Positions 13,661-39,700 are shown, numbered from the stretch's first letter. The stretch: 64,000 nt of DNA from Auanema rhodensis (GCA_964057225.1 OZ059899.1:7874001-7938000); one strand, 5' to 3'. The notes: a model not told the origin generated them from the letters alone. A program made the numbers and translations.

Positions 13661-16600
13661 TTAGCTGAGAAGTTTCATGACTAAACAACGAGTTGCATCG
13701 TTTTCCATGTCGAATTGGAACTGAAATTTAAAACATATATATTCAACTACAGATTATAGTACTAGATTTTTGATCAAATACTTCTCTCAAATATCTCTAA
13801 CAGTCGATTGCAAAACGAAAATAACATAATTATCACTATGTACTTATTCAATGTGAATAAGAAATATTGGTGGTGAAGTATTTCTAACAATTGTTAAAAA
13901 TTTCCCTCCTCTTCTCTTCTCTTTCTCTCTCTCGAATTTCGAAACATTTTGGCATTCCATTTCTACTTTGGTTTATCAAAAAACTTCAATTATACTCACC
14001 CCGCATCCATCACCGAGATTAAAATCATAAACTGATTCAAGTTCAGCATCTAAGCTGCCATCAGCATCTTTTAGCACAATATCCAGATCGAATCCTAATG
14101 AATCGGATCCAATTGATGGAGTATTTGAGTGTGTTTCACTCAGTGGATTTGAATCAGCAGGAGATGTAAGAGCAGGAAGGCGTTCTGAAAATGAAACATT
14201 CTTATAAAATCCAAGCAATAGTTAATGATACTGTCAAAAGTTTTTTTAGAGAACTCTCAAGAAAAGCTTTATAACACTTACGTTGATTAGCCATTTGTTT
14301 GGCTTGTAGAGAATTACGCAATTCCATACGGACTAGCTCAGAACGAGATGGTGGTCGCCCGGATGCAGTCCAGTAAGGGGAGGAAGCAGATGAATATCTG
14401 GAAAAAAAAAAGATAATAAACCATAATTTTTCAAATTTTAAAGTTTTTTCAAGCTCTGCTATATCACTACTGAATACTATACTCAGTTAGTGTATTTTTA
14501 TATTCTTCTATGGTATACTTAATCGCCTATACTAGCAGAGCAATAAAACTGAGGACAAAGTTCTAAGCTAACGCAAATAGTTAGAACAAGCATTTTGCTC
14601 GGTCATTCTCTTATTTGTGAGAAAAATCCATTCAATACAACTACTGTTTTTCCTTTTACCCATCTTGTTTTAGAATACATGTTATAAAAACAATGAGCAA
14701 TAGCAATAGTAGTAGCAATAGTATATCGTTATATCGAAAAATTTTTTGATTGCCTACTTCCTGTCCAATCATCTTCAAACATTCCATTCAATCTCTCGCT
14801 TCTATTTTGTCATCTTCTCATATTTTCTCTCTATCTCCTCTCTCTGTGTGAATATATGTTGATTTCTTTTACTTTTTTCGTCTCCATCTGCTTTTGTGGG
14901 CATTTCATAATAAGTCACGCTACTCATTGCGGATGTGCCAAGTTGAAAACATGCGTAGATAGATAGCAAAAAAAGAATGAGAGGAAGCGAGCAAAAGAAA
15001 ATAAGTGAAAAGAATGTTGTAAAAACAAAAACAGATCTAGTCTGTTGTTCCGACAGATAGATCAGAGTATCCATGCTGTAAACTTGTAAACTGGAAGATA
15101 AAGTCATTAAGCTGGACTTAAAGAAGCTAATGTCGGATTTCGTGTGCACGAATGGAGTGACCAACGTTCCCTTCGTATACAATCACATCGCGATACGACG
15201 CTCGAAAAATTTTGTATTATTTGAATTACGAATCATCCATTTTCAGGAAAAATAGGTTTGTAGTTTGGAACGAAAATGAATTTAGCACCAAACACCGAGA
15301 CTGTGATTTTTTTTGTTAAGTTCAAACTATGAAGAAACAAAAAAAAAAGAATATGAGTATACTTCCGATTACTATAGTTTTTCTGATGAAAAAGTAGTTT
15401 TTGTGTTGCTCTTACTTCTTTGGCATTTCGGAAAAATCTTTTTCTCCTTCAACTAGTTTGTTGTTGTTTATCGTACATTTAACGTACAGCGAATGCTTTG
15501 CTCTGTATGTCCACAACGAGAACGATGGACTCGAGCTAGTAATACAATAATACTACAAGTATACACAGAAAAACAAATTTTCGCTCAGAACGAAATACAT
15601 AAACATGTACTCTGTACAGTACAATTAGTTGTCATACTTTGATTTGACATAAAACCTTTTGGGAATTAAGTTCAATTTGAAATTGCAGAAATTTGTACTA
15701 TTTTCTCGGAATTTCAGAAACAAGATTGTCTTGATAAAACATGTTTATAAAAACTATATGCTCAGATGTTTCATTCATTTAGGTATTCATTTCTTTATTT
15801 TATTTGATATCGAATAATTTAGTGACCAAAATGTTAACAAATTTTCCGTGCCCAGCAGAACAGATGAATATCCAAAATATTTTTTTTTCTATTTTTCCAA
15901 AAAGAGAAAAAAATGGTTTTCACACTCAAATGAGCATATAATCTTAGTATTTTCTCAACTCCAAATATCTACATACTGAAAACAACCAGATGTTTGTCCA
16001 GTACAAAGCGAATGAAGCCCTCGGGACTTTTCTTGAGGTCCAGTATACGGCACAACACGAATAATAATCTGGTTGAGCCTTCTGTGTTCTACCGGCTTTA
16101 TTCACTCAGTATAAAGCCATTTGTGGGTGTATTTTCTTGTTTTTTAGAAGCAAAAGAAATTAAATTACCTGTAGGGAGATAAATGATTATTCATCGAAGA
16201 ATGATGCATATCTTCCATCATATTCATTTCCATAACAGAGCCACCCTGAAAATGAATGTATTGGAAAAAATTAATGTATAATCTGATAAATATATATTGT
16301 AATTATAGAAAATACCAAATTTAATATAAAATTAATTTTTCTTGTGTTCAAAATTGTTAATATAGACTATGATTTTTTCTAATAAATGATGCATTTATTA
16401 AAATTATAATTGAATAATTATAATTATAATTACCTGAGGAAAAGCATTGTATCCGGGTGGATGATGACTGTAATTCATAGGATTCGCTGGTCTTTCTGGT
16501 ATTGCTGGAGCCGAAGCCTTCCTTTTTTGACTCTTAGTCGTCGCAACTGGCTGACTAGGAGCAGCATTTTGAGCAAAATGAACCTGGAAAAGACGAATGT

Positions 16601-19600
16601 CGTATTATTGAAAGTTTTCTTTTTTCGTTCAAAGGCTATTATTTAAACACATGATATATCTATATCTATATATATTATATATAACAGGAACAAAAATATA
16701 TCCCCCACCCCTTACGTTTACACATAATCTTCATTCAACCAATAGCTTAATACTACATATAAACAAGATGTTAACTATGTTTTCTATATAAAAGTTTCTT
16801 AAGCTTTTCTGACGTTTTATCAATATGCTCAGCATTCCAAAAATAACTCGAAAAGAAAGGAGAAAAGAAGCCTATTCAGTATGAATATTTCGTGTTCTTC
16901 TAAACGTTTGTATTTGTAATTTACTATTTCTTTTTTTTTTTAGTTTTTTAATCAAATGCGAAACCAAAAAATAAATACGGGACTCAATGTATTGAACTTT
17001 TGACGTTTAGGCCATTTGAACTAATGTTTCAACGAGAACTAGAATTACGCCCATTCTAGACTGATCATAGAACTCGCCAAATTCTGCTGAAATATTCATT
17101 TCTCAAGCAAATCCTTGGGACCATGATTGAAGTATATCTGCTTCATCAGCTTTGTATTTGTGTGATGTTTACACATAATTTTTGTTAATCAATGATGCTT
17201 GTGCTTAACTACTTCCCTGAGTTTTTAAGAAAAGGGCTCAAGTGTTTTCACGGGTAAGACGAGATACAGAGAGAAGAGCTTTTTCAAAGAGCGGCGTAAA
17301 AGTGCGAGAGCCGCAACGGAAGATGACCGATCTTTGTACAAAAGATATGCTTTAATCTGAATTCATGTTGTGAATCGATTTAAATACAATAAGCTGCAGA
17401 AGGTTTAACATGAAGAGTTACATAGAATCAAGTGCATTGATGCTCATATATCATTAATGATTCAATTAAGACAATAATATATTAAGCAATCTTCGCAACA
17501 CAAGATCTTTGTTGATAGCACTTCTAAGTGAGGGCAACTGCAAAATTTGTGGACAATTACGATAATTAGTTTTACAAGCAAAAACAAAATAAGATTCAAG
17601 AACTATATGTAGCAATGAAAGTGCAAAGTCACAAAAAATTGTGATTCTTAGGCGAATTGCTATAACGAAAATGATTATCATGCATACATCGAAAGATGCA
17701 CATATAAATACATGAACCAAAATTAAAATATTTGAAATGTTTACGTCAAATTTCACGTGAATGCACAAGTTGTTTGGTCTAGTTCTGCCTACATGTTTTG
17801 ACGTACTGTTCAGTGATTTTAGACACACAGGAACCTTTTTGCTCATTTTCAAACAAGAGGGAATAATAAGATAAATATGGAAGAACAGGCAAAAACATAT
17901 TACAGATTATTTTTTCTTTTTTTTTTGGAACTGGCCAAGAACGAATAAAAATATTTTGAAAAAAAAAAACCGTAAATATGGGGAAGAGTGCGAATATTTT
18001 ACGAAAAACAATAGATTGTTGCGATTAGCACGTATGTTAATTATAAATAATTTCACATGAAATGTTAGAAAATTTTTTTCGTGACTATATGGTTATGATT
18101 AAAAATATTACAATAATAATTATGACATATTATTTATCTAATTTATAGAAATTTCTGTTGGGTCTAGAATTTTGAGTTTTGGTTCTTCAAGCTTTAACGA
18201 TATGTCTACTTTTACAAAACTTTGTCTAAGAAACAATTATATAAAAACAAATGTTCGAATTAATATTTTTAACTTAAAATAATCTATTATTTCAAATATT
18301 CTACCGAGTGACGAAATCAGCAGAAAAGTTGTCAATAATAGACAGACAGTTTTTATGAAGCAAAAAACATGATGTCGAAAATCGTACATACACTATTGAC
18401 ATACCTGATGAACAGTCGTAGGTGTTGGAACTTGGGATTGATAATAGTCTGGCCAGTGACCAGGGTGGTGATGAGGCTGGGAAGCTGATGCAGCAGGTAC
18501 ATTGTGGCCGGGACCGAGCTGACTCTGACTGGGCATCATACCGGCAGCGTGATGTGGACCGGGGACCGTTGGAGGAGCAGCGTGAACTTGGCTGGCCATT
18601 GGATAATCAGGGGGACATAAGCTGGGATGAAGATATGAAGAGCTGAAATATATGATATTCTATAATGTGATCTGTGTGTTTTAAAATATTTGTAAATAAT
18701 TTTCGAAACATATATATAATATATAATTTTTGAAGAGGTTTACCAGGATTATCTTATCCTTTATGAATTAAATGGATTAAATAAAAATAGAGAAAATCTT
18801 TGAATATTTTTTGAAATCAATGTAAAAATTAAATCACTGATATTGTATTGATATATAAATCACACTTGCAAGTGAAAAGCTGAAGCGGAAACTTTTACAG
18901 TAAGAAACGGGGGTAAGTAAAATTACAGTACTAATGATTTGAATTAAGGAAGAAAGTAACAAATGTTTTGAATATTAGCTGATATTAAAGAGATATGAAT
19001 ATATGTTCTTAAATATAAATCATATCCTTTTAATCTAAGGAACATTTAGGATGGCAGAACACCATAGGTGCTGGGCATGTGTGGAAAGAAGCTTGACAGA
19101 ACGTATTTGTTATTCGAACGGCTCTAGCCTGCAACTGTTTTGGAAAACATTAATGTTTTTCCTTGCCTTGGAAAAGCTTTTGCAGAGAGGGAGAGATGGA
19201 AAGAAAGTGAAAAGGAGAGTAGAAGGAGACGAAGAGATTCATAGAGAAAAGTGAAATAGTTAGAGATAGAGATAGAAAGAAATAAGATGAACACAGAAGT
19301 ATAAGGAGAGAATGAAAGATAGAAAGACAGAGAGAAATGAAAGAATGAAAGGCGTGGTGGGTGGCTAGTTTCGAGATAGAGGAAGAGTAAAAAGGAAAGA
19401 ACGGCATTATGAAGCCGTATGACTTTAGTGCTGTTATTATAGTTGATTTAGTTATTACAACTGGACCAGTGTTTATTTATCACTCGTCTTGTAACTTATT
19501 AGTTATGGTTAACATTATTCTTTTATTTGAAAAATATTAAATTTAAAAAATATATAAATATATAAATATATATTTATATATGTATATAATGTATAGATGA

Positions 19601-20616
19601 TATATGAAGTATATGTTTCAAACAAACCCGAAATCAGTTAAAAATCAAATAGCTGGGCAAATTTCAAAAAATGTTGTGAACAAGAAGCGAAATATAGCAG
19701 GCTAGACGAGAATGCAACCGCTCGTAAGGATTAGCGAATTTGGTCTGAGCAGATTGATTACGTAAAGCACGTCATTTCGTGAATGACGTGCAATAATTAA
19801 AATATTTACTGGAACAATCATAGGTAAAAGAATAAGACTGGGGATAACGAATTGAGAAATGATAAATTATGATTTGAAATTAAGAACAAAATATATTAAA
19901 TATGAATTGGCTTTTAAAGTATTTACAATACTCATAATATGTTCATACGAGCTAAAACCAACAACTAGTTGACTCATTTGATCTAATCATAAAGCTGCAA
20001 AGACGATAATACCGCCTCTGTTTATCCAAATTCCAATGTAACAAAGACCAGAGGTTAGAGATTCAGAGTTGACTGAGGATCGATGTTTCACTGCGCCAGC
20101 CTGTTATCTCTGTACAAATTGCATAATTCTTTTTTTTTGCAAGGCAAAAACTATTTTTCAACAATGGAGAAAAGTTAAAATAATGTCTACATTGCCAGCT
20201 TATGATACTAATTCACAACACACGAAACCCACTACCCTTTCTATCTCTTCTCTACTCTCTTTGTCTTGCTGTTTCCTATTTCTCTGTTAGATTTCAGTTT
20301 CTGCTCTTAACATCAATGTCCATTCGTCTGTTGTTGTTAGTGTTTGGTCACAACAATGGTTGGCAAAAAACAGAACCTTCAATAGACATACGAATAGCTT
20401 GAAGCTAACTTTCAGCAGAAAAATAAAAGATTTTAAAACAAGTAGGCATTTAGGTGTTCATAGATATATTATTTTGATATAGACAAGTAAGCATAATAAC
20501 TAAAAGAAAATTAATTTGTTTAGTTTAAGAAGTACATTAAATTCAAAAGTAAAAAAAAATGAGAAAAATCAAAAATTTGCTCATGAAACTATTTTGTATA
20601 TTTGATAGATAGTTTT

Positions 20617-20658
<42 letters not shown>

Positions 20659-22007
20659 CTATAATGTATATATGTTCTGTGTATGAATGAATCAACTCTA
20701 ATTCTAGCAAGAGGGTTCCTCTGTTTTGACATTAAGACGAACAGCGTTCAGAATTTGCGTTGAAAGTGCTTGGGTGGCACCGTGGGTGGCTGTTCTATGT
20801 GATAATAGACGTGGTTGTGTGGACATCGATGACGACGATAAAAAATAGAAGTGAATGATGAAAACATGTGTAAAGAGAGTAAGACAGAACAGGAGATTGG
20901 AGAGAAAATGGAGCGGCAACAGCTGGATGCAAACAACAACAACAACAACAACAACAATAACAAATCGCTTAGTAGTAAAGGAAAAGTAGGTGGAAGTGAA
21001 GAGAAATAAACACAGAGGGAGTAAGAGAGTAAGGAAGAGGGAGAGAGAGAGAATAAAAAATAAGAGTTATGAGATGTTCAATGCTGGTGGTTTACAACTA
21101 TAGTATATCTGAACCAACCATCAACAGCTATAGTAAGATCAGCAGACTAGGTTGACTTAAGTTAATGTCCGAAACTGGACAGCAAAACATTGGTATTGGA
21201 ATAAACAATATTGAGAAATATCAGAAAAAAACGAAAAGCCAGTATCATAGTAGTATCAGTATACAGATATTATAGGAAATATAGATCTATATATATATAT
21301 ATATATACATTGATGTAGAAATGTGAATGTCTACATATAAGAATCAAGCGCCATTTCGCAGTTAAAATGTTGAACTGTTTGACCACGTGTTATCTATTTC
21401 TCAATGATATTTCCGCTTTTCATTGTGTTTGATTTTTCGAAAAGGGAGTGGAACTATGAAACGAAAGAACATGAACATCACTTGCATGACATGATATTGG
21501 AAATTTTACAAAAAAAATATAGGTATGAATAAGCTGAATGAAAAAAATAATAGAGGAATGGTATGATATTTGAAATAAGAAAGAAACATTCAGATTTAAT
21601 ATCGGCATAAGCAGAATTTAAAGAAAAAGAAGATAATATTTGTTAAAACAACTTTATGCACTTAGAAAAACTGATTTCAAAGTGTAAAAATTAAAAAAAA
21701 AGAGCAGTTGATAGAACTCACCACTGATTATTTGGGTATCCGTTCATATTGTTAGGCATAGATCCAATATTACTATTATTGTTATTATTGTTATTATTGT
21801 TATTATTATTATTTGTATTATTATTATTATTGTTATTGAGGTACATCGATTGTTGGGCCGACATGCTTGAACCCTGCTGCTGGTACATAACCGGCCTAAA
21901 AACGAAGAATTTAGTGAATCAAACTAGAAAAATACAAGTGAGAAGTATTATGTAAAAGAGACTGGAGGTGCCTATGTGAGAGAGGTACAGGAAAAGAAAG
22001 AAATGAA

Positions 22008-22066
<59 letters not shown>

Positions 22067-25000
22067 CCGAATGTAAACAAGATAGAGAGAAAGATTTTTT
22101 AAAATAGGGATTAGGAATATGCTTTCAAGCAGGAACAATCAGTTCGAACACACATGCTATCAATGTCTATACTCGAAATTATGAGAGAGAGATGTGGCGA
22201 ACTAGACACCCGATCAGCTACACGTTGAAAATATTAACAATTTATGATACTGAATGATGATAAAAAGAGATAAACAGAGAAGTAATAATAGACGGCTGCT
22301 ATGATTCTCAGGATTCAATACCATATTGACCACGAGGGCATTCTTAAGTGTGCCTTGTGGGTGTCCTGATATTCGTTTGACCAAACTAGGAAGAAATAAG
22401 CGATTGTTTTGTGGAACATAGTCAGTTATTGTTGCGTAATCTGACAATAGTTAAGAGAAAATTGTCTTATTTCGTTTTGCTTTTACCATTCCATACGTTT
22501 TTCGTCATCTTTGTCGTCATTCAAAATAGAAAACGACAACGATGGACATAACATCATCGACAACGTCGTTGATGAGGGTGACTAGATAGACGATACTAGA
22601 TACCTTCCTAACTTTGTACGTGATGATGGGAATAAAAGGAAAAAAAAGGAAAAATTGAAATAAAAGATAGACAGAAGTAAGAGAAAGAGAGAAAAAGAAA
22701 AAGAAAGATCGATAGCTAACCAGAGGACGAAATGATCAAAACCGGTACCGGATGAACCTAACGACCTGAGCTGGTCTTTCATCTATGGAAGCAGGAAATT
22801 TTATACAATTTTCTTTTTAGATTTTGCATGAGATGGAAAAGAAAAATTTATCTATGAACTGACACAACAGATGGTTACGATGACAATCGAAGTAAATAAT
22901 TGACTTTCTATGGTTGACAGCGTCAATTATGAAAAATTTTTCTGGTTGAGCTAATAGATTTGATGCATACACCATAACTATTCCGTATAATTCATTTTAA
23001 AACTTAGGAAGTTTAATTATAAAATTAGCCATAATTACAAGAATAGATAGTCTACGATACGACAAATCCAAGATTTGTACTGATTAATCATTCCGAAATA
23101 AACAATAGACACAAAACAAAAATACAAAAGTTTGAAATTCGATAAGAATAATTGAAATCTAGAAGAGAATTTGAAGAGAATTCTTAGAATACTGATAATA
23201 TCATGATCACCATTTTTTGAAAAATGGTCAATAGTTTCGAAAAAGGAAAGTACGAACATAGTTAAACCAAACTAGGCATTGGTTGAATAAGTCAATATAG
23301 ATTCGGAAAAGAAACAAACTCCAAATATTATAAGAAAAATGTCTGAATATCAGATGATTTTCATTCCAGAAAGACAATAGAACGGATGGCAACTCTGATT
23401 GCAACAGCAAGAATATTCAGAGGATGACATTTAGATGAAAGAAGACATGATCGTAAAATCGCTGAAGGTCAAAAAGAATATCGGGAGAATAAGCTACCCG
23501 ATGACTCTCAGATAATACTTGCTTAAGAGATATTCAAACATAATATGAAGTCAACTTGTATTATATTACAAAGTACTCTAAGTTGTTGAGATTGGAGACT
23601 TTTGAAGATGTAGACGGATATGCTGACGACATACGGATTTGCTCGACTGAGCTGTGATCTTTGTGGCAGAAGGAGCAAAGAAGACGATGAAGAAGAATCG
23701 AAGAAGTGGAACGAATTGGCCAGGGTGAATCGACTCTCTTCGATTCTACATGCATCGAGCTCTTCCCTTTCCTCTTGTTCTCACTCTTTCCCCCTTTTCT
23801 TTCTCATGACTACGGGTCTCTACTTCCTTCAACTGTTCCTTCTACTCCTCTTTCTTCTGCTCCTTTAGCGCCATTCTATTCCATGTGTGGTGAGCCAGGG
23901 TCCAGCCAACCCAATAGACTAATCAATCGGCCAACATAGACATACATACATACACACAATCCTTTCCGAAGCTTCCGAAGGAAGGAGAAAGACATGAAAT
24001 GGGGCAGAGAAGAGATGAATATAGAGAAATATTTAGAGAGGAGATGGAGATAGGAAGAGAGACTAAAAGAAAGACACAGGAAAAATAACCCAACAAACAT
24101 GTAAGGGTCAACTAAGATGGCGAAGTAGTAAGCTACATAGAACCCGATGCTCGAGGTGAAAAGCCAAGTTTGAACAAGTCCAAGGGAACATGACGTGAGA
24201 TTAATGGGATCAAAGGCCACGCGACTCGCGGGGGTGTGAGGCTCATTGCAGTTAACGAGTTAGAAGGATACCAAACAACGATTATAAGAAAATAATTTTG
24301 AGAGTACTGCAGGAAGTGATGCTTTATTTTGGATTATTTCGAGGAGAGTGTTAGGGGTGATAGATTCAAGCAGATGAAGCTGAGATTGTGTCCCAAGATT
24401 ACTCATTTGTGACCGCTCTATGATTGTTATCTCGGCAATCTAGAACTGCTTAAATGAGACAAATGGGGTGATAGCTAGTGCCTGTGGTCCAAAAGGGAAA
24501 AAGTCCAGCCACCACAAGATGTACGAAAGGAAGAGATACTCAGTATGTTGATTGACTTGAGATTGAATGCTTCAAACATAACAGAGATATTGATAAAACG
24601 AAGAGAGAGAAGCAGAAAAGGAATCAACCCGGAAAGTGAAAAGAGAACGTCGTGCCAGGAAGAGAAGCTGAATCGTTGGAACGCAATGTTCTATAAGATG
24701 TCAAGATGTTTGGGTCGGCGCAAGACTGATAGCCAATAGCCAATGGTCCAGCATCACGTACATAAAGAAGGAAATAACAGTTCGAAAATAAATTAATAGA
24801 ACATAAGCTCTATAATGATAGATAAACATCATCTACGTCATTTCGTTTCCTTTGAAATAAAACTAATTATCAGAAATCAGAACTTTATAGGTGTGAAGTT
24901 TGTGAATATTATTGGTAAACTATACAATATAGATGAAATCAAGAATTTAAAATCTTAGTTATGACGAGAAGGAAAAGACCTGATAAGCAAAAAATGTCAT

Positions 25001-28000
25001 TGTATAACTTAGTGTAATGTAAGTTGAAGCTTAAGGTCAAAAAAATTTGAATGAAGGAGTTGATGGCGGAGGATGTAAGAGGTCATGTGAATAAAAGCGT
25101 GTTTCATTCAGAGAGATGAAAGTCGCAATGAGAGATGTGAAAAAGGAAGTCAAAAGAGAAGAGAGCGAATAAGAAAAGTGGAAAAGGGTAATAGAGAAAG
25201 GAGTAAAGCGAACGAATACGCAGAAAGCTGGACAACGAAGCAAAGAGCATATCGACAAGTATAGCTTATAAAGAATTTGATTCAAAATTTTGAAGTTCAA
25301 ATTTATAGAAATTAAGAGTAGCGATGGGAACTTTATATGATTCACGATTTCATAATGCTTATAAGGCATGAATGTGGTGTGGAAAAAGTGGACTGAAGAA
25401 TTTTGGTAGTCAATGTGACTCTATGAAATACAATCCACGATGACGAAGTGGCTGGCATTGACCATGTGCTTTCACTCTGGTGCAGTGTCTTCATAGACAT
25501 TGGACTCAGAAAGAGCAACGTAATATCGGAAGCGGAAAACCGAGAAGAGAATAAGTGAGAGACTGAGAGCAATAGAAATATATAGAAACGAAAAAGAAAA
25601 TAGAGAAGTAATATACTGAGAGAAAAGATGCAAAAAAAGGGAGGAAACTAAGAAAAAAGGTATATGAATTTGGAATAAAATTGGGTGAACTAACAGAGTA
25701 CAACAATCGAGCGAAAAAAAAATTAAAAATTGACTCGAACTCTGGATATATGGCCAGTCTTCTCTCTTATCAATAACCAAACGTGTTAGCAATGATAGCT
25801 GATAAATGGTATAAATATGCAATACCAAAACTAACTGATAGCCAGTTCAATCAGTTTGCCAATCAAAAGAGAATCGTTAAAATAAGGAAATTATTGAGAC
25901 TAATTCTGTTGTTGAATGCAGAGATATAGATTGCAATATATGTAATTGGAACAGTCAACTCGAGGTAGTCAATCGTCCTATGAAATACCGGTCGAAAAAG
26001 ATTTGGAATAAACATAGGATGAGAAGAAGGAGGAGGAGGAAGAGGATGAGGAGGAGGAGGAGGCGGTGGCGTAGGAGTAGTAGCAGATGGAGAGAAGTAG
26101 GCATATACGGAAGCATTACAAAGACGATGAAAGTAGTATCGCTTCAATACAGTCTATCTAGAAATGAGATTTAGAGAGAACAAGAACATAGGGGAGATTG
26201 TGAGAAAGAGAGAAAGAAAGAGAGAGAGAGGAAAGAGGGATAAAGAGAGAAAAGTTTAGAGAGTATGTAAAAGAAAAAAAGTAAAAGGAGATTCAGAAGA
26301 AAATGGCAATGGAAAAGATCCCGTCTCGGGATCTGAAGACCGGTTTGACGTGAAAAACAACAATAACAACAACAGATCAAATGTGGTCCGATTTGGTGGT
26401 GGTAGCAGGAGGACTGGACTACATGCATATGTTTTAGTTGATGAGTTGTCGCTAACATAAAAGACATTTTGATGTATGTTTGTATGTTTACAAGTTGATA
26501 TAGAAATATAAGAATAAAATACAACAAATGTTATAAAAGGATATAATGATATTAACAATTGTTAGTTTATTAAAAAAAATGTTGAAATGAATGAATATTA
26601 AATGATTTTCTATAATTATAATTATAATTTTATTTATATTCTGAAATATTAAAATAATTTTCTGAAAAAGTAAAAAAAGATTTTGCCATTTGAAATATAT
26701 TTTGTTCTCTACAGTTAAAATCAGATTCATAAAATCACTATTTCTTGTTTTCAAAAATAATATTTTTCAAAAAAACAAAAAGAAACTATTAGTCAGCAGT
26801 ATGTTTATGATATAAAAAATAAAAAAATAATTAATTAAATTCAGCTGGAAGCTGTTCAAAAATCAGAGAATGAAGTCAAAGATGAGAAGCTAAAAGAAAG
26901 AACATAAACTAGTGGTCAGTGTATGTAAAGGATTGACACGATAAACAACAAAACATCAAGGTGATTTGTCCAGTAAACTTCTCTCTATGTCTCTCTCTCT
27001 CTCTCCCTCTCTCTCATTCAAAAGAAAAAAAAACTTTCGTTCACTTTTCTTGAATATTAACAATATTTGTTTTCGTTTATTTTGTTTAACTTATATAAAC
27101 AATAATTTACTATAGATACGATAATTTGTCTCATTGAAACTAGGATAATGACCACAAAATTACTGAAAAAATATACGAGAATAGTAATAAATGTATAGAA
27201 AAAATAAAACAAAAAGAAGCATTGATACAAAAAAATAAGGAGAAAGATTGAGCTAAAGAAAAAGTAAAATCGTTTTTAAACTAAAATTGAAATTGTTAGT
27301 TTGATATAAGGAAGAACTAGGAGAAAAGAACAGAATACAAGGAAGAAAAGAAAGAAATAGAAGAATATGAAGAAGAAATTGGATTAACTTTTGATTCTCA
27401 AATTGCAGTTTGACGTAAGAGCCATGTAAATTCATTGGGTTCTCATTAAGATACAATGTCAAAATCTTAACGTTATCTGTATACTTTCATGTATGTATGT
27501 TTGTTCAATCGAAAATAGAGGAATGAAGCTGATGATGAAGATTAATGCAAAACGAAAGCGAATGTCGGTGTTGTTAGAGCTTAAAGAAGCAGAGAGAGAG
27601 CAAAATTCATGAGATCATTGAAGTTACAAGTCTATCAGAGACGCAGCGAAAGTCTCTGTGTGACTGCCCCAACATGATGGCATGGAGAGACGTAGCAGGA
27701 AAGCAGCAGTGGCCATGATCAAATGTAAGAGGAAGAATAAGTAGATGAAGATGAAGATGGGAGTATGAACGAAACTCGATTAGAGCCTGAATACGTTGGA
27801 AAGAACATGAGAAAATTCTGATTTGTTAGAATCAGAAATAGCGGATCAGAAACTAACTGTGGATAAGTGCCACTATTATTGAACTAATTTTGTAAAATTA
27901 ATAATAAGAATATAATAAAACAAAATGAAACAAGTTAGTATTTAATAATATATTGTTATGATTTCAATAAGTTACTGACTTCTCTGAAGAGTTTTTAAAG

Positions 28001-31000
28001 AAAACTTCAAATATTATTTAATATATATCAATATATATGTATGTAGATGTAGATAGATAGAAAGATAAATCATTGAGCTCATCTGAAGCTTATAAATTTA
28101 AGAAAGAGCACAGATTATTTGAGGATTTTTGATTATGTAAACTAGAAATTCTTTGATATACGAAGTTTCATCACTGAACGAGTGAGATCAATCTTAACAT
28201 CTGGCCGTACTAAAAGTAAACTTTACCAGTATCTTCGGTTGACTTTTTGAAAATTCGGCAACTTGAAACGAAGCCAAGTTTTAACATTTTTGTTTAATCT
28301 ATAAACGATAAAAAGAAATTATTCAAAATAAGTAATAAATGGTTCATGATCTTCATTCATGTATTATTGAGAAAAAAAGACTTCTAAAACTAAATCACGT
28401 ATGTTTGAGAATAAGATGTATTTCTATATATCTCCAACATTATCTCTGATTTTAAGAACAACTACGTAAAACAGTAGGTGAAACTTCGAAACTAGAAGAT
28501 GTTTACCTCATATATGATAGAAATTAGAAGATAACTTTAGAATTTACGTGCATACTTCACACGTATATCTAGTTATTTTGAATAATAAGAAAAACGTGAA
28601 ACGGTTGAATGCCTATTTTGAACATTAGAAAAGGACAAACTGTATTCTTATTATTATAAACATTTATATATACATATAGTATTTTTTAATAAATGTTGAA
28701 TAATGAAGAGAAATAGAACAGAAAAAACGATTACATGAGGTAACGTTGGTTAATTTTAAAAAAATATGTGTAGCTTGCTAGTTTTTTCTTTCTAAAATAA
28801 ACAAACATCAAAATATGATAATAAATAGGTTCAAATATGATATCAAGAGGAAACATTACTATAATTCTTACTGGTGGGCTCTCATTATTATTATAACAAT
28901 AGTTATACATGATAACGACTATTGAGAAAAAAAAGAAAACAGAAAAAAAAAGAACATTATTTGTCACAGTCAGTAGTTGTCATTGACGAAAATAATAAAC
29001 AACCTTTTTGCCTCTAGATATAGACATCAACCACACATATACAGAAAAGAAATGGAAAACAGTAGTAGATAATGTATATAATAACATAAGAGATCCACAA
29101 ATTTGTTAACTATATATATATATATATATATTGTTTTTTAAATATATATTAATAGAGAGGGAATACCAGATATAAAAGAAATATTGAAATATATATATTA
29201 TATAATATATAATATATAATGTAAATATTAACTAAAATAACAATCTGGAAAAAGTGAGGTGTAAAAATCTTTGAATACAAAAATAAAAGATTTTCTGTGC
29301 AGAAGAATACGATTGAAAATGAAGAAGATAAATTCAATACTACAGTTTAACCTTGAAGAAATTGGCAAACGAATACTCAACACTCAAATAAAACGTAATA
29401 TTCGATGATTTATAAAGAGGAATATGATGAAAAAAAAAAAGAAGTTTCTCTTGAAAAAGAATATTGTCAGTCCAAATGATTAATTATTCATTATGATAAT
29501 TATTTATTCATTATTTAATTGATTGAGTCATTGATTAAAGTATTATATCATTAATTCCAAAATTGAACAAAAAAAAGAAATCATGAGATTTGAATAGACA
29601 GTAAGCGATCGTGCGTTTGATGACCTGCTTGAGTCAAATGGAATTGCTTGCTGGAAATTTCAACAAAACTTCGAAACTGTCCAAACGGACAGGCTTTGGC
29701 GCTAGATCGTCAGATCGTTTTTTGTCGACCGAAAATAGCAACAAAGACTTTGCAAACAACACGCGCACACACGTGCTTCTTAGTCATTAGACTAGCGATT
29801 CAGGTCCAGGTCAATCAGACTAGTCAGTAGCTTCTGAAGAATAAAGAAGAAAAGACAACGCAGATGAATCGAAGTCCTGACCCTACGATATACTGTTGTA
29901 GTGGCTTACAACTGGATTAGAAAGAACCACTGATTCGTGCATGTATGTATGTGTGTGTCAACTACTTTACGATTGCTTGTAACACACAGCAGCTTTCTAT
30001 GAAACATGACTCGAAATTTTTGTTGTATAAAGTGAGCATGGTATATGGTATAATGAAGAAAATTGAAAATTCAAAGATATTATGCAAACTTTCTCGCATA
30101 TTCAATAGCATAACAGAGAAAAACTAAGAAAATAGTACCAAAAAAAAACTGATCAAGTAGAATACAATATGAACAATGTTAGTGAGGAAAGGAGAAACGA
30201 AAACATATCGCCGTGTTGAAATTTTTGATTCAGTTAGTTGTGACACTATACATATAGTATTCAACTAAGAAAACTGTATACAAATATATGTAAAAACAGT
30301 TCATTCATATAGTATATAACTATATTTATATATATTTATTAATAGATGTGTGATAAATAGAATCCAATGATCTGTAAGAAATTCAATCTTTATCTGTTAG
30401 ATATAGAACAACATTGAAAAAAAAACGTCAATTGAGAAGCTTAAATTGAAGATGGTATGTGATAATCTCGATGACGCTATACGGAATCAAAAATTGAACA
30501 AAAGAATCAAGGTATAAATAAGATTCTTGATTCTTAGACTGTTTGGGTCAAGTTGTTTAGATGTCAAACTTTATCCTCTCTCTATACAGCCAGTCTCTCT
30601 CTATAATTCTCAACACAACATGTTGTTCAGGGAATACTATTTTACTTGACCACTTAATAACTCTCTCCCTCTTTCTTTCCTTCTCTCTCTCTCTCTTCCT
30701 TTTCACCTAAAAAAATATCAAATGGCCGAGCTATGAGGGGATGGTTTCAGAACGAGAGAAGTCGTCAACAAAAACAAGCGATTATACAAGTGATTGGTGG
30801 ACAATAGATGTGGTAGGTATTGAATTAAATTAATCCTTCTTTTTCTAATAAATAATACTAAATGTATAGCTATAAAACAATTAAACTCATTTCAATATAA
30901 TAGTAAAATATAGTTACAAAGGATGATGTTTTATATTAGTTTAAATGCCTTGTTAGGCAAATATTTTGAGAATTTTAGAAATAATTAATTATATTTCTGC

Positions 31001-34000
31001 ATTAAATAAGCTATTAAAATTAAAATTTTGTTGAGTTATTAAGATTTCCAACACAAAAATGTAACAGAGAAATATATTAAAACCATATTAGCATGTCAAA
31101 TCAGATTAAAAAAATTCTATAAGAGATACTTTGATTAAACAAGAAATTCTTTTTTTCCTCTTTCTTATTATGGAATAAACCTGCTTATATCGTGACAGAA
31201 ACGATTAAATGGTCATATTGTTATACAATTAATATCTGACCACATTATTTAAAACAAAACAAAAAGGTTAAATGTAAAATATAATTCCAATATAACTATT
31301 ATTTCTGAAACTTTACTAACAGCTTCCTAGTTCAGAAAAAAAGAAAAGTCGATTTTTGATTTGAACATGAAATACAAAAATAATATGACCCATTGATATT
31401 TTAACAATATGTTTAAAAAAACAGAATAATCATCAGTTAAAGAAGAAAATATTATGAAAGTAACGTTATTTCATGTTGAGATAAAAAAAAGCAAAATTTT
31501 GAGCTGAATTCAATATAATATCAAAAAACAAGAAATTTTGCATACAATTTGATAATTATGCATCTTTTCTTAAGATTCTTCATAATCATAGTTTTTTTTT
31601 TGTTTTTTTTGCTTAATAATTGCAAAAATAGAATAAAAAACATTACACGAATTCATTTGCAGAAATTATAATAAACATAACCTTATTGAATGTATATATG
31701 TGTGTATATACATTATAATATATACTTTAATCTGATTTAAAATTTATCATTTAACTATAAATAATTCTTTTCCCACCTTTTCGAATATAATAATAATTTG
31801 AATATGATCTTATATTGATCCCCAATTTAAATATTATTTTAATAATGTTCATAATAGATGCTTTTAAAATGACAAGAATTCTTAGAGAGCAATCGTTCGT
31901 ATACAAAAATACGTGAGAAGTTATAAGCGTATGCGAATACCGTAACTACAGTAATAATTAAAAACTTTTTTTTTGTAATTTTTAAAAAATATTTTTATAG
32001 AAAACTTAGCTTTCTTTCACGTAATACTCAATTTTCATAACCTTTAAAAGCTGTTCAATTGATTTATCATAATCAGTGGCTCAGCATTACCAAGTACCCA
32101 TGGCAACCTCAATCCCTTATTTTCAGCATGCATTATCTCATTGCCAGCTGCAGTTCTCAGTCTTTCTCAGCAGTAATATATCTACATGGATATCTTGTTC
32201 TTTCTCTCTTTTTACCTCTACCTCTCTTTCATGTTATCTTTCCCAGCTTTCTAATACCCACTATGCCTTTATTTTCAAGCTGCAGCTGATAGAAAGCGGT
32301 TGTTCCTGCTTCCTCCCGGATTTTCTACTTACCCTTCATTATCATCAAATTTCCGTTTCAAAATAGAAAAATATTAGACGTTCAAAATGAGGTTTCATCA
32401 TATTTATTAAGTTTTTGACTTCCGAATTCATATATTCTGAATAAAATGGCTATGTCATTAATGATTCGTCTCTCTGAATGATTCAAATTGATATCAACTT
32501 GTAGATCATTGTTTTTCTTTATTTAGAATATTTTTAAAATCTTATTTGTAGGTCCAAATATGGAGGCTTTAAAATCGCAAACAGAACAACTCCGTCAAGA
32601 AGCTCAACTGGGGCGCAAAAAAGTTTCTGAAGTTTCGAAAGAGTAAGTTTTACAGATTTAAAAAATAGAAATAGGAAAAGCTGAATGAACTGAGATATTT
32701 TGGAATGCCTAATTCAATATGTATGCTTTGCAATACTTAACTAAGTTGAAGTTTTGTTTTAATATTTTGGGTTGATTTAAATACAATCGTAATCATCGAA
32801 ATTGAGCTAAGCAGGTTGTCATGGTAATAGCTACAAAATTTCTTACAAACGCTCTTTGTGCTCTTTCTACATATTGCAATGCATTATTTAATTCGTAAAA
32901 TTAATATTATAAATATTTTAGCTCATTATAAATTTATAAGAAAGTGAAAAAGAAAGAGGAAGAATTATTTGATTCAAAAATACAATTTATTTTAATTAGT
33001 TCTCCAATTGAAAATTAAATATTTTATAAAGAACATGAAAACTTTTTAGTTTGATGGAATACTGTGAAAAGAATAAAGCTACAGATATGTTAGTCAGTGG
33101 ACCAATCGACAATCACAACCCCTTCCAAGAAAAGAAAAGCTGTGCAGTTCTATAGGTGATGAAAGGATGTATAATCATAATCTCTCTTTTCCCTTCATTT
33201 TTCAAAAGAATGTATAAAATTTTCTGATTTTGATGTAATTTTTATGTTAAATATGATGTTCAATAAAGAATGAAAATTGACGTACTCTGAGAACTCTGTT
33301 TCATTCGATGCTGCGCTCGTAGAACAAGCTGGTGTTGCCGGAGTAGTATTGGATTCACCGATTGGTCGATTTGTTCCGAGAAGTTGCTAAAATAGTGTTA
33401 TAGTATTCAATATTCAATCTGAATATTATATATTAAAAAAAAACTAACCTTTAGTAGAGCATCCTTAATGGGTTCCTTTATTGGTTTAGCTTTCTTCGCC
33501 CTCGGCTTCCGCGGTTTTTTCGGTTTTGCAGCTGCCTTCTGATTACCAGACCGCTAAATAAAAATGTTATAAGAACAGCTTGAATATTTCATTAAATTAA
33601 AATGCATATAAAACTAATTTAAAACTATAGTTTTTATTTTTTCCGCAAATATTATCAGACAAGAACTGGCAAATAAGGAAGTATCGCAAAACTTTCTTGA
33701 ATGATTTATCAAAATAGTTTTTGAACTTGCCTGTGTTGTTTCTGGAAAATTGGGCTGACTAACTGGGGTTTCAGGTAAACTTGAAGGGGTATTAATGGAA
33801 GAATTGATAGAAGATATCCTAAAAAAGTCAAATTTTATAAGAAAATAAAGATAAAATACCTAGTAACAGTACATAAAAGAGATAGAGAACTTTCTACATT
33901 ATCATTTAAATTATTATTATTTCCTTTAACTAATCGGATCAAGCAATATGTTTCAACGTCACCAAACAATAATGGCAATTGACATCGACTCTCATATCCT

Positions 34001-35858
34001 GAAAACATACAAATTAGGTTTCATAGATTAAGGTTGTATATTTCTACATACCTGACTGAAAAAGGTTTTCTAACATGGCTAAGTGGTCTGGTGGACAAAT
34101 TTCACTTATTCGTCGGCCAATCAAATCTGATGTAGGCAGCCAAGTATCACATCTAAAACAGTCACTACTGTTTTATATAGTTTTAAAACAAAAGTCTTAC
34201 TTATTATTTACATTAATGATATTAGCTGATGGATCAAGCTGGATTAAAACCTGGCCATGATTTCCCAGATGCGATCGTGCAACACACAGTGTTGCTGATC
34301 GTTCTAAAATATTATTTTTTTAAATAATTAACTAACTTTCTCTATTTTATTAAATTGAATTATAAAAAAATTATTCTAAATGAAGTTTTTCAAAATTACG
34401 AAAATATAAAGCTACCTGATTCAATATCACTAATCAGTTGACGAGTTGAAATTTTAGCAAAAGTTACCTAAAATAATTTCCCTTGTAAAGAAAACAATTC
34501 AAATTATTTCAAAATAACAAATAAACATACATCAAAGGGAATTTCTTCACTATTAACTGTTTGAAAATGCATTCGACAACTCATACTTGTCGATGGACCC
34601 GAATTAAGAATTGGAAGGACAATATGGTGGTCTCTTAAGGAGACCAATGTATATGCAGATAAAGAAGTGAGATCTCTCTGAAAAACAAAAGCATGAGATA
34701 AATTATCTTTTATACTTATTTTATATTTAAAAATTATTGAAATTTTAATAGAAAAGTTAACATAGATATCATTCTATTTAAATACAAATCAATCATAACA
34801 CACCTCATCGCTCTTCTATTTAACTTCCTCCCCCCGTCATCATCCTACTTCCTATCTATCTCTATTATTCATTTGTTGAATAGAACTTGAACCTTAGCTT
34901 TCTTTCAACTAACTGATATAGAATTTCTTCAGCAATGAAACAGAAAAAACAAAACCAATCATGATTGGAAACCGGAGACAAATAGAATAAGAATTAGAAA
35001 TCACCGGGAACAATCATGGTACATCACGTTTTAATATCGAATGAGAAAAAACGGTTTAATCTTTCATCTTAAATCATAATTCGGCCAAAAAGCAGCTAGA
35101 TTCCGGATAAATTTAAGGAATAGCGAGATTGGAACAGCAGTAGGACAAGGTCATCTTCACCCTATCTCTTGTTTCCTTCTTGATTGTTAACGTCTTTGTC
35201 GCCTCTACTAAACATAGCTGATGTTCTGTATGGCTTACTGGCGAGAACGACTTCGGTAATGTTTGGTATGTGTCCAATTATGGTCACAAAAGGACAAACA
35301 CACTTGGTTCAAACGATGTAGAATGATTGTGAAATTACTATTTGGACAAAGAAAATTCCAAGCTATCACAATTATTTCTGTATAAACAAATGAAAATTTC
35401 TGAATTCTATTCTTTTTCGCTTGAAAAATACAAGGCTATAAAATAAGTTGGATAAAAAGTAAAGAGGAATACACACCGGTTTAAATCCGAGTAAGTCAGA
35501 CACAGTTGGACTTATATAGTCTATGTTTCCGGAAGCTGAAAGCAGAAACCAAAAATAAAGCCTAGAATCAGAAGGTAGAGCTCCGGCCAGATTAGTTATA
35601 TCTGAATTTTTGTATCCCGGAGAAGACGATGATATCCAGTCTTCTTGTATAGGATTTAACCCTAAAACATTATGATATACACAACGGTTTTGTTTAAAAA
35701 ATTGAAAGACCTCGAGTTAAAGCATTACGAACTATTGATAGAACAGATGTTAACTGGATTTGTGTCATACGAGGTGAGGATCCACTCTCGAAGACGGATC
35801 GCACAACATCTTCTGCTGTTGGTATCATCAGATGTGCTGTCTCACCTCCGCCCTCCAT
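13661..35858 (-). CDS. p160/SRC (NCOA)/Taiman-like PAS-domain nuclear receptor coactivator, 17 exons, ~722 aa as assembled
   Basis: Exons 35858-35711, 35661-35477, 34677-34531, 34467-34416, 34303-34201, 34152-34052, 33998-33860, 33818-33731, 33553-33449, 33386-33286, 21895-21722, 18642-18405, 16583-16434, 16245-16169, 14397-14282, 14184-14000 and 13720-13661 all join in phase (2169 nt). PAS-A FWFLLSASGNIDYISPTVSDLLGF..SAYTLVSLRDH, MSCRM, TLCVAR; KDALLKQLL; SELVRMELRNSLQAK; terminal LVMKLLS*. Confidence 0.8.
19758..19791. promoter_or_regulatory. Intronic bZIP-site cluster: TTACGTAA plus inverted pair GCACGTCATT-N5-AATGACGTGC
   Basis: Perfect 10-bp inverted repeat 19767-19791 next to the palindrome TTACGTAA at 19758-19765. 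Confidence 0.4.
20618..20653. repeat. (AT)n microsatellite
   Basis: Direct reading. Confidence 0.9.
20929..20963. repeat. (CAA)n trinucleotide repeat, intronic
   Basis: Direct reading. Confidence 0.9.
22011..22061. repeat. (GA)n microsatellite, ~25 units
   Basis: Direct reading. Confidence 0.95.
23400..23760 (+). mobile_element. Degenerate non-LTR retrotransposon RT fragment inside the large coactivator intron
   Basis: Frame reads LLRLETFEDVDGYADDIRICSTEL*SLWQKEQRRR*RRIEEVERIG, matching the YADD + helix + (K/R)IGL layout of LINE RT domains 5-6, with in-frame stops. Boundaries approximate. Confidence 0.4.
32094..32107 (+). promoter_or_regulatory. X-box (RFX/DAF-19 site) GTACCCATGGCAAC upstream of the G-gamma gene
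   Basis: Exact fit to GTHNYY-AT-RRNAAC; a second near-match GTTGTCATGGTAAT lies at 32815-32828 in the gene's intron. Confidence 0.7.
32560..33155 (+). CDS. gpc-1: Heterotrimeric G-protein gamma subunit (GPC-1-like), 2 coding exons, nested antisense in the coactivator intron
   Basis: Exons 32560-32642 and 33050-33155: MEALKSQTEQLRQEAQLGRKKVSEVSKDLMEYCEKNKATDMLVSGPIDNHNPFQEKKSCAVL*; GGL domain, NPF motif and CaaL prenylation box; AATAAA at 33262-33267. Confidence 0.93.
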
Positions 35859-36726
35859 ATTGAGGCTTCTGAAGAGAGTAAGAATATGAATATAGAAGTT
35901 GAAGATCGATTTAATACAAAAAGAAAACGCATAATGTTTCATCATAAACGAGGATAGTACAATAATCAGTATGGAAATAATGATGAAACAGCATGACAAA
36001 TCATCTGTTCATCATGCTTTAGCAATGATGATGGTTGAAATTAGCCATTCTAGATGAATCATATAACATATACATCCAAATATATACCCTTTTTTAAATT
36101 TTTTATACTATATTGTATCATATAAATGGATTGTTTTATTATGCGTATATTTTTGAAAAATTGCTGGAGGGTTTTTCGATAACAATACTGACAAGCTGAT
36201 GATGAATAATTGATTCCGGCATATCGTGTACGTTCTTGTATTGAATGTCCAGGAGATGGCTAAAAAGGCAAGATAACAGGTAAACAGCTTATTAGAGAAA
36301 AAAAGGGAGCGAGAGGCGAAAGGGGGAGCGGCGATTTCTGATCTCAATCATCGATCGCCACCTTTTTTAGTTATCGTCATGTCAGATTGAAGGAATGTAG
36401 ACGTAGCAGAAACAAAAGTAGTAGCAGCTGGTACTTCACGGCACCAACTGATGATGTGAGTGATCCAGCGTAAATCAGCTGATTAGGTAGTATGTTGAAG
36501 ATGAACATCATTTTATACTACCTAAAGTCATATTGTTGGCTTTGTTCATGATTTCTCTTAGAGCTTTTTTCGAGTGTGTAACCGAGATCCCCTGCTAGTG
36601 ATGAGAAACAGCAAGACAAGAAAAAGAGAGATGGTGGTAAGAGGAAAGGAGATGAAAGACGAGTTGGACAAGGAAAAGTTAATGAGCGATCTGGTCAGAT
36701 CAACAACGGTTTCACGAAGATAAATG

Positions 36727-36760
36727 ACACACACACATACACACACACACACACATACAC
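36727..36760. repeat. (CA)n microsatellite
   Basis: Direct reading, two interruptions. Confidence 0.85.
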
Positions 36761-39700
36761 AAGGATTCAAGTTGCGGATAAAAAACTGTAGTAGTAGCAG
36801 TAGCAGTAACAGTAGTTGTAGTATTAATAGTAATAACTAGTCTCAAGATTTCAAATTTGAAAACTGACTCATTGTTTCTTTTTCTAGAAGAATAGTAAAA
36901 ATATAAGCAAATAATGGATGCATAGATTGAATAAAACAACCGTATAATTAGCTATCATATTAGAAAATGAATCAAATGTGCACGTGTACGTGAACTTGAG
37001 CCTTGACCACATTCAGCACGTTATGTAAGGCTAATAGAAAAAATCAAAACGATCAAGAGTAGACAGAGTAATGCAACAAACGAACAAAGAAAAATTCGGA
37101 TGTTGGTTCGTATCGTGACGAATAAACGATGATGGACAACAATTTCTCTCGACTTTATGGTGTGGGTGGAAGATGATTACAGAAGAAGACGTCGTCGACG
37201 ACGACGATAACGAAAGAAAAGATAATGCACCCCAACCCTGTAACAGCTTAAGACCTTTTTCGCTTTGTATTTGGTGAACCTTATATTTTCGGTGAAGGGA
37301 ATATGTTTTGATTAATCAAGACGAATTGACAAAGATTTATAGAGACATAATAAGAAAGAATAATAGAAATATGGGAAAATAATAGTAGACATAAAGGAAT
37401 AAACATGAGAGATGTATTCGAAAAGGGGGGGGGGGAGAGGGACTGCATGGTCATTCCTCAGAAGTGTGCTCTCTTCAGATGAAGGACAACGCAGGTAAAA
37501 TGCTAAAATCATGACATTTATTTTGCATTTAGGACATATTGGCAATTAGACGAGAAAATTAACAAGAAGCCAGCTAAGTAGGGAATAAGCTTAGTTCGAG
37601 ACTGTTTACCAAATTGTTTTAGACAATAAAAGTGAGGAACTCGAACAACAAATATTTGTTCGTACCTGATCGGACAACTTCCTTTGGTTCTTGGCACGAA
37701 TCCTGTGTGTATGTAGTATGTAAGTATGTGTGTAAGACAGAGAGCGAAAGAAATAGGAAAAGAGAATGGCCGAGGAGGAGACAAAACGCGAAAGACGAGA
37801 TGATTACGAAGAGAAGAAAGCAATTTGTGAGAGGGTGAATGAAAAATTACTGCAAAATAGATCAGATGCTTTGTTGGTAAACAATCTGAACAACAAGAGA
37901 TCGATGATGATGATGTTATCTGATGATGAAAAATAAACGGTTCGTCTCTCGTTCTCTATATCTCTATCCCCTTTTTCTCTTCAGAATTAACGAAGACAGA
38001 AGCAGGAAAATGATAGATAGATGAAGACAGTATGAAATAAAGAGTAAGATATTGAAATTCGTATACTTCATCTTATTCAACACAGTAAGTAGTTAAACAA
38101 CTTTACTGGTAAGCTGACACGAGAACAATTTGATCAATGAATACCATGAATCTATATAAGATGCTGGTCAAATTTTTATAAGCAATTGGCTATATATTGC
38201 TTGTTTACTCCTATTTTAAATCGTTTCGAGTTTTTCCAGGTTGGAATAGTTATAGTTAAGATTTTGAAAAGAATGGCAAGAATGCAAACCATAACTAACA
38301 TTTATATTATTCTTTCTCATAATTCATATAATACGAAACGAAAATAGTTGGTAAAGAACAAGGAATCATAACATACGAAATGTTCTGGTTATTGAGGACA
38401 AACATTGATCTCTAAGATGTGAATGATCCATGTCAGCTTTATGAGGGTTCCCTTCTATTCCTCTCTTTCTCTCTCACTCTTTTTCTTTCTGTTTCCTTTT
38501 CCCACTTATTATTCCGCCACTTTTAGCATTAATATCCACTCTTATTGTGTTCAAATTTGTTGTCAATTTTCCCTCAAATTATATGAGAAAAATTAATTTT
38601 GTTTTCCCACAAAAATATCAGAGAAGCTTAATGTTGACCAACAACGAATAAAAGATGAACGTTCAAGCAACGAATTGGAACATACATGAACCTTCCAAGC
38701 TTTTGGGGAGAGGGGGGGGGGGGTCACGACCTTGGATGACAGGTTATTATAGGCTGAAATAGACAAATGGCATTTAAGAAAAGATTAAGTGAATAAAAAA
38801 TAGTGAATGGAAATAAAAAGGTGTGAATAATTAGAAAACAAGAAGCAAATGATATATAGGATCAAGAAAAAAAGAAATTAATACAAAATTATAACACAGT
38901 AAATAGCAATAATGTAACGTATATGATAAATTACATAATAGTATTAATACTTATAAAAATAATTATAAAGGATAAATACTTAGCACTTTTAATCTCAAGC
39001 ATGTATAAAGAATGAAGTGGTCCATATATGTGCATCTTCGTGAAAAATGGACAAATAATACAAGAATAAATTGAATGAAACAGTTTAAAAGGACATATAT
39101 CAGAGTAATAACATTTCGAAACTTCCTCTTTCCCATGTATTCAATAGTTAAGGAGCCATATAAGAAGAGACTAGATGTTTGACGGACGACAATCAAATGT
39201 GCATGGTATACTTTTTCTCATACTTTTTCTATTTTCTCTATCATTTTACAAATCTTTTTTTTAATGTTCTTGTTCTTTTGTTAATCTTATGTATAGGACT
39301 GACATAACATTACATAATAAAACTATTTGAAACCGAATGTCTCAAAACGAAAGAATGTTTTCCAGGAAAGGGTAAAGGTTATTGACCTCTCGGGGGTCTC
39401 CCTGTGAAAGAACCTCGAGGCAAGGTCTTTTAAACGGGATGGGATGAACCGTTTGTACTCTTGGGGCTACGTTCTCGCTAGTTTCTCTCCCACCCATGTG
39501 TGCATTCGCTTCGTCTCTCAATTTGAGTTAAATTGAATCCGAATCTATTATTAGTAATGGTTCAAACAAATAGTTACTATTGGTTTATGTTAGATTCTTA
39601 GAATTTGCAGATAGAAAGACGAATTAATGGCTTTGCCATGCTCAAATTGAGTTTAAGAATAGAATAAGAAGTGATTTTTAGAAGAAAAAAACAAGGAAAG

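Follow-up and report, generated by a model that had tools for sequence, protein, structure and literature searches.

Organization of the Gene

The analyzed DNA of the nematode Auanema rhodensis (GCA_964057225.1 OZ059899.1:7874001-7938000), hereafter the window, is an AT-rich stretch of 64 kb with a G+C content of approximately 31%, and all the positions below are counted along its whole length. Its minus strand carries a real nematode gene of many exons, which runs in a single open frame from an ATG at 35858 to a TAA stop codon at 13663-13661 and is followed, 27 nucleotides (nt) 3' of this codon, by the polyadenylation signal AATAAA (13634-13629). This is a conserved and undescribed gene of the helix-loop-helix (HLH) and PAS type with coactivator-like features. 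Its orthology with the p160/SRC/NCOA/Taiman coactivators of nuclear receptors (NR), which had been put forward in a preliminary description of the stretch, is unproven.

The gene model was rebuilt from the raw sequence by hand and by script. The preliminary description had joined 17 exons in phase into approximately 722 amino acids (aa); one in-phase chain was indeed obtained, but it consists of either 18 exons and 752 aa (model Y) or, in an alternative arrangement, 19 exons and 759 aa (model X). All 17 junctions preserve one frame and almost all the splice sites are strong, T-rich YAG acceptors and GT donors each being present in 16 of the 17 cases. Intron sizes fall into two classes, one of 41–63 nt and the other from 97 nt to 11.4 kb. 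The six motifs from which the gene had been recognized are all on the minus strand at the places given for them: PIQEDWISSSSP at 35653-35618, MSCRM at 34584-34570, TLCVAR at 34292-34275, KDALLK at 33466-33449, SELVRMELRNSLQAK at 14342-14298 and LVMKLLS at 13684-13664, the last one directly before the stop codon. The features of the gene are the following.

Possible upstream exon, 36522..36594, minus strand: 73 nt, ..EKSSKRNHEQSQQYDF; in phase with the acceptor before exon 1; no in-frame ATG
Acceptor 10 nt upstream of exon 1, 35870/35869, minus strand: could accept a spliced leader or an upstream exon
Exon 1, 35711..35858, minus strand: start ATG at 35858; helix-loop-helix hairpin without basic region
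Exon 2, 35477..35661, minus strand: linker with IQEDWISSSSPG and first PAS-A strands (..YFWFLLSASGNIDYISPTVSDLLGF)
Exon 3 in model Y, 35161..35250, minus strand: SFSPVSHTEH..ETRDR; weak acceptor ccgaag
Exon 3 in model X, 35302-35239 plus 35207-35161, minus strand: 31-nt intron between the two parts
Exon 4, 34531..34677, minus strand: middle of PAS-A with MSCRM; strong splice sites, phase 0/0
Exon 5, 34416..34467, minus strand: carries VTFAKISTRQLISDIES
Exon 6, 34201..34303, minus strand: end of PAS-A (TLCVAR) and beginning of PAS-B
Exon 7, 34052..34152, minus strand: central PAS-B helices (LPTSDLIGRRISEICPPDHLAMLENLFQ)
Exon 8, 33860..33998, minus strand: end of PAS-B
Exon 9, 33731..33818, minus strand: Ser/Pro/Thr-rich linker; ends at a GC donor, or at 33764 with the alternative GT donor
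Exon 10, 33449..33553, minus strand: basic stretch KPKKPRKPRAKK, a likely nuclear localization signal; ends in ..KDALLK
Exon 11, 33286..33386, minus strand: starts with QLL.., completing ALLKQLL (aa 383-389); donor at 33285
Intron 11, 21896..33285, minus strand: 11,390 nt; sense strand T-/C-rich
Exon 12, 21722..21895, minus strand: Q-rich stretch and poly-Asn tract; in-frame ATG 8 nt past the acceptor, which could be a separate start
Exon 13, 18405..18642, minus strand: Pro/His/Gln-rich
Exon 14, 16434..16583, minus strand
Exon 15, 16169..16245, minus strand
Exon 16, 14282..14397, minus strand: SELVRMELRNSLQAKQMANQ
Exon 17, 14000..14184, minus strand: conserved acidic/hydrophobic block DSLGFDLDIVLKDADGSL.DAEL..VYDFNLG.GCG
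Exon 18, 13661..13720, minus strand: ..RCLVMKLLS and stop codon

The two models differ between exon 2 and the exon carrying MSCRM. In this interval, model Y has one exon of 90 nt with a poor acceptor (ccgaag/T) and model X has two small exons separated by an intron of 31 nt, the shortest of the other introns being 41 nt long. Both are in phase at exon 3. Intron 9 needs either a GC donor (CAG/GCAAGT) or a GT donor located 33 nt upstream. At position 33730 of the minus strand a GC-AG intron (CAG/GCAAGT ... tatttag) is likely, every other donor being GT. The junction from 33286 to 21895, which the preliminary description had singled out for confirmation, spans 11,390 nt; it preserves the frame (phase 2), and its donor is good and its acceptor strong. 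The 5' end of the model was placed by phase only.

Upstream of exon 1, the minus-strand segments 36522-36594 and 36193-36259 have good acceptor and donor sites, and the former contains two out-of-frame ATGs. They may be exons of the 5' untranslated region (UTR) or an alternative N-terminus; for 36522-36594 the assignment to the 5' UTR is possible, and no convincing ATG exon was found upstream of it. Neither the 11.4-kb intron nor the region at 36-47 kb gave any convincing extra exon when scanned, and Rfam and tRNA scans of the window gave no matches. The plus strand is G-/A-rich at 18000-30000 and 36000-44000, the minus (sense) strand being C-/T-rich, and long low-complexity runs of the CT type are present, such as (CT)n around 22000. 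Since this strand bias covers both the large intron and the region upstream of exon 1, the transcription unit may begin well upstream.

The N-Terminal Half

Domain, structure and PDB tests were made on individual exons instead of the spliced protein, and PDB and Pfam matches were considered up to an E value of 10; the exon pieces are short, and distant homology could escape searches at this level. The AlphaFold model of exon 1 alone has a predicted local distance difference test score (pLDDT) of 83 and consists of a helix (residues 15-24), the loop GSSP and a second helix (29-48), that is to say, an HLH hairpin. The PDB sequences matching this exon were designed helical-hairpin repeat proteins, Pfam HLH was not matched, and a Foldseek search with the predicted hairpin gave no useful information.

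The sole PDB match of exon 2 was AHRR PAS-A, over its residues 92-127, with 16 of 36 positions identical (44%, including ..LGF), an E value of 1.6 and homologous strands. An exhaustive HMMER search with this exon of 1.84 billion cluster representatives gave nothing significant, only four bacterial repeat proteins being returned. All five PDB matches of exon 7 were ARNT PAS-B chains aligned at homologous helices (E 1.1-1.6), and the same exon gave the only Pfam match among the 18 exon pieces, which was PAS_9 (E 0.17). The PAS-B of the gene model has the canonical ..IGxxIxExCxPxD.. motif, as in ARNT. Exons 3, 6 and 8 had no PDB match and exon 4 matched only unrelated proteins. Altogether, nine exon queries were run against PDB; two of them returned exclusively bHLH-PAS proteins (bHLH, basic HLH) at the homologous position, and the other seven gave nothing or unrelated proteins. 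As two such rightly placed results in nine queries are unlikely to arise by chance, we accept, with modest certainty, that the N-terminal half is made of tandem PAS-like domains.

Word-indexed protein searches with exons 1 and 4 found no relative, but full-length orthologues lie outside the length window of these searches and so these blanks say little. Exact look-ups of six ORFs (open reading frames) of the window gave no match.

The Nuclear Receptor Box

After PAS-B, the gene product contains in this order a Ser/Pro linker, the basic stretch KPKKPRKPRAKK, ALLKQLL, a stretch of low complexity and a C-terminal acidic region. Only one LxxLL motif is present in the 752-aa model, LKQLL at aa 385, within ALLKQLL. 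As had been noticed from the sequence, this NR box (KDALLK/QLL) is split by an intron; the intron is in phase 0 and has strong sites, and it is the junction of exons 10 and 11 that creates ALLKQLL, within the sequence ..PIKDALLKQLLGTN.. The C-terminal LVMKLL, which had been likened to the LLQQLL of SRC-1a and Taiman, is LxxxLL and not LxxLL.

In its core, LLKQLL, the NR box is identical to an engineered SRC1-1 peptide, and it matches hSRC2 box 3 fairly well (PMC13568512). The box 3 peptide (ENALLRYLL) is the best binder of Brugia DAF-12, and the engineered SRC1-1 peptide with the LLKQLL core gained DAF-12 binding (PMC13568512). With regard to the Taiman and NCOA motifs to which sequences of the gene had been compared, the NR-box and LLQQLL peptides are printed in the same study (PMC13568512); for the others, among them the Taiman motif SEYVRQELRAVVGAR, which was searched for in the literature, no source was found.

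The C-Terminal Half

Residues 421-640 contain 15% N, 14% P, 12% S, 9% A, 8% Q and 7% H and include a poly-Asn tract. At 21740-21830 on the minus strand, this tract is encoded by AAT/AAC repeats giving 7 + 13 Asn with one interruption, and it is probably variable in length.

The only relative of the gene found in the databases was an uncharacterised protein of 86 aa from Heterorhabditis bacteriophora, which matches exon 17 with an E value of 3e-12. The block DSLGFDLDIVLKDADGSL.DAEL..VYDFNLG.GCG is approximately 90% identical in Auanema rhodensis and Heterorhabditis bacteriophora, and the match also crosses the exon 16/17 junction (..NQHRL..). This near-identity, together with the match across the junction, indicates that at least here the sequence codes for protein, that its splicing is modelled correctly and that selection acts on it. 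In the minus-strand segment 14000-14110, an acidic/hydrophobic block of 36 residues is nearly identical in both genera and its flanks are diverged.

The acidic block and exon 17 as a whole have no Pfam family and no PDB relative, exon 16 has no Pfam match, and a metagenome scan with the conserved block gave no match. Exon 17 alone was modelled by AlphaFold with a pLDDT of 58 and no secondary structure. A block that is unstructured by itself fits a short motif that folds upon binding to a partner, and from its sequence the 36-residue block looks like an undescribed short binding motif.

Relationship to the p160 Coactivators and Proposed Function

The absence of a p160 protein from C. elegans, mentioned in the preliminary description, agrees with published data: the SRC family was scored absent (Simionato 2007), the supplement of that study giving the SRC bHLH family a value of 0 for C. 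elegans as against 1 for other protostomes. As a consequence of this absence, a retained or a replacement protein would be expected outside C. elegans. The proposal that the gene encodes a p160-type coactivator holds in its general layout, as the PAS-like half, the basic stretch, the NR-box-like motif, the low-complexity stretch and the acidic tail occur in the order of p160, and a Gln-rich low-complexity region does precede the C-terminus. On the other hand, all the p160-specific features tested at the exon level were missing.

For these tests, a profile of the SRC bHLH was built from three SRC-family sequences taken from the supplements of Simionato 2007 and was run against the window in all six frames as well as against the spliced models. 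This profile (..EKRRREQEN.YIEELAELI...KPDKCAIL..) scored no exon of the gene. The upstream exon 36594-36522 (..KRNHEQSQQY..), which by eye resembles an SRC-like basic region, was rejected as such with a profile score of 1.7 bits.

On the basis of its sequence we file the gene as one that may work like p160 and not as a member of the family. We tentatively propose that this is one minus-strand gene for a nuclear transcriptional coregulator of approximately 750 aa working like a p160/Taiman coactivator. The HLH-PAS half would pair the protein with itself or with another PAS or HLH factor, and the basic stretch would bring it into the nucleus. ALLKQLL could then dock in the activation function 2 (AF-2) groove of a liganded nuclear receptor, which might be DAF-12, EcR or another nuclear hormone receptor (NHR), and the conserved acidic block, disordered when alone, would recruit CBP-1 or Mediator.

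Several results weigh against this proposal. Besides the failure of the SRC bHLH profile, no p160 Pfam domain (SRC-1, Nuc_rec_co-act, DUF1518, DUF4927, NCOA_u2 or PAS_11) was found on any exon piece, which includes the two families, PAS_11 and DUF4927, with which the preliminary description had suggested checking its claim. NCOA1 PAS-B was absent from the PDB matches of exons 6, 7 and 8, and the acidic block did not match the p160 CBP-interaction domain in PDB. The gene product has one LxxLL motif, versus three or more in p160, and this lone motif misfits the DAF-12 consensus [F/H]x[LITM]Lxx[AIL][IL]. Furthermore, every PAS match is weak and none of them is significant by itself (E ~1). Finally, the joining of the PAS half to the Q-rich half rests on phase alone, with a 1-in-3 chance, and an ATG is available within exon 12 itself, 8 nt past a strong acceptor.

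Besides Strongyloides DIP-1, no nematode transcriptional coactivator has been described according to structural work on the DAF-12 of Brugia and Haemonchus published in 2026, in which in-silico candidates with LxxLL-type motifs were called for (PMC13568512), and most vertebrate NR coregulators are reported missing in C. elegans (PMC3517510). Being conserved and combining an HLH-PAS half with an NR box and a tail of the activation type, the protein is a concrete candidate for a nematode NR coactivator, and the peptide-binding and reporter assays already established for DAF-12 are suited to testing it directly. If the gene were a true p160 orthologue, it would be the missing general coactivator of liganded nematode nuclear receptors; if not, it would still be a PAS-domain regulator that has not been described before and that two or more nematode genera have conserved.

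Alternative Explanations

A closer relationship to p160 than the one proposed here would make the gene a true, strongly diverged p160/SRC/Taiman orthologue, kept in nematodes with EcR and a ligand-regulated DAF-12, docking through ALLKQLL and recruiting CBP-1 through the acidic block; we regard this as possible but rather unlikely. Another explanation concerns the unity of the locus, which could give two products, with or without a joined long form: a PAS-only protein from exons 1-11, ending by read-through or in a 3' exon not seen here, and a Q-rich/acidic one translated from the ATG of exon 12, each with its own promoter or spliced-leader site. Exons 1 and 12 both have an ATG 8-10 nt past a strong acceptor, an arrangement usual in nematode mRNAs that are trans-spliced, no exon bridging the 11.4-kb intron between the halves was found, and the Heterorhabditis gene model covers the C-terminal block only. 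The layout of the a, b and c isoforms of C. elegans lin-42 offers a parallel (PMC11153552). However, the 33286 to 21895 junction has the phase and the splice sites already mentioned, and the T/C bias of the sense strand continues through the intron into the C-terminal half. Without splicing of exon 11 the frame stays open for approximately 31 further codons until a TGA; that the first AATAAA is approximately 200 nt beyond this read-through stop also counts against the explanation. Two separate products are possible but rather unlikely in our opinion.

The remaining explanations retain a single protein and change its class. An orthologue of lin-42/PERIOD would have PAS-A and PAS-B, no bHLH and a C-terminal half binding casein kinase 1, and it would account for the lack of a detectable bHLH, for a PAS-A more degenerate than PAS-B and for the two-part locus. 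Nevertheless, the casein-kinase-binding motifs SYQ and LT, reported to be highly conserved across animals, do not appear: no exon contains SYQ or [ST]Y[QE] or a helical LT motif, the sole LT being in a Pro-rich stretch, and neither LIN-42 (8GCI) nor any PER chain was among the PDB matches of the PAS exons. We regard such an orthologue as very improbable. The gene could also be a divergent member of another bHLH-PAS class that has lost its basic region, for instance an AHR/AHRR-like partner or decoy of AHA-1/ARNT instead of an NR coactivator, in which LxxLL would be incidental. The best PAS-A match is AHRR (44% over 36 residues) and the best PAS-B match is ARNT; moreover, AHR, CLOCK and SIM proteins commonly end in Q-rich regions. 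Yet phmmer searches with the AHR, HIF, CLOCK and ARNT bHLH in the six frames of the 64-kb window and in the models gave nothing in or near the gene, so the canonical bHLH-PAS classes are excluded as orthologues, and genuine orthologues of ahr-1, aha-1 and hif-1 show far stronger conservation than this gene. An AHRR-like decoy without basic region is possible, but membership of this class is on the whole improbable. It is also quite improbable that the gene encodes a PAS protein peculiar to nematodes and unconnected with nuclear receptors, whose p160 likeness would be only a shared order of common modules. The negative p160-specific tests would agree with this, as would the finding of a single relative in the databases, itself an uncharacterised fragment from a nematode, but ALLKQLL standing right behind PAS-B and a basic stretch and being followed by a conserved acidic tail would then be an unusual coincidence.

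Neighboring Genes

Three plus-strand segments of the window were also annotated.

50386-50784, plus strand: adjoining ORF resembling a metalloprotease propeptide; no Pfam match
52723-53052, plus strand: matches Pfam Adt-1 (E 3e-11); exon of an ADAMTS/Adt-1-like protease gene
53430-54080, plus strand: 216-aa ORF with Thr/Trp/Arg/Pro-rich repeats (..TTTTWRPTTT..); no Pfam match; perhaps a mucin-like exon or else a portion of the ADAMTS-like gene

Comparison with Known Systems

The gene product shares with p160/SRC/NCOA1-3/Taiman the order HLH, PAS-A-like domain, PAS-B-like domain, basic and Ser/Thr-rich linker, LxxLL, Q-rich region and acidic C-terminus, and its NR box resembles hSRC2 box 3. It differs from these proteins in being about half as long, in having neither a basic region nor the SRC bHLH signature, and in its PAS-B, which carries the ARNT-type motif and does not match that of NCOA1. 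The comparison with LIN-42/PERIOD gives as common features PAS-A- and PAS-B-like domains in the absence of a bHLH, and a locus in two parts that might have an internal start, whereas the gene has an LxxLL motif and an acidic tail instead of the SYQ and LT motifs. AHRR is the best sequence match of PAS-A and ARNT that of PAS-B, both of them weak, but no canonical bHLH is present in the window and the similarity is far below that of true orthologues. Lastly, by its description, Strongyloides DIP-1 is similar in its proposed role as a DAF-12 partner docking through a short motif (PMC13568512), although DIP-1 docks by means of FxxLL and has been reported from no family other than Strongyloididae (PMC13568512).

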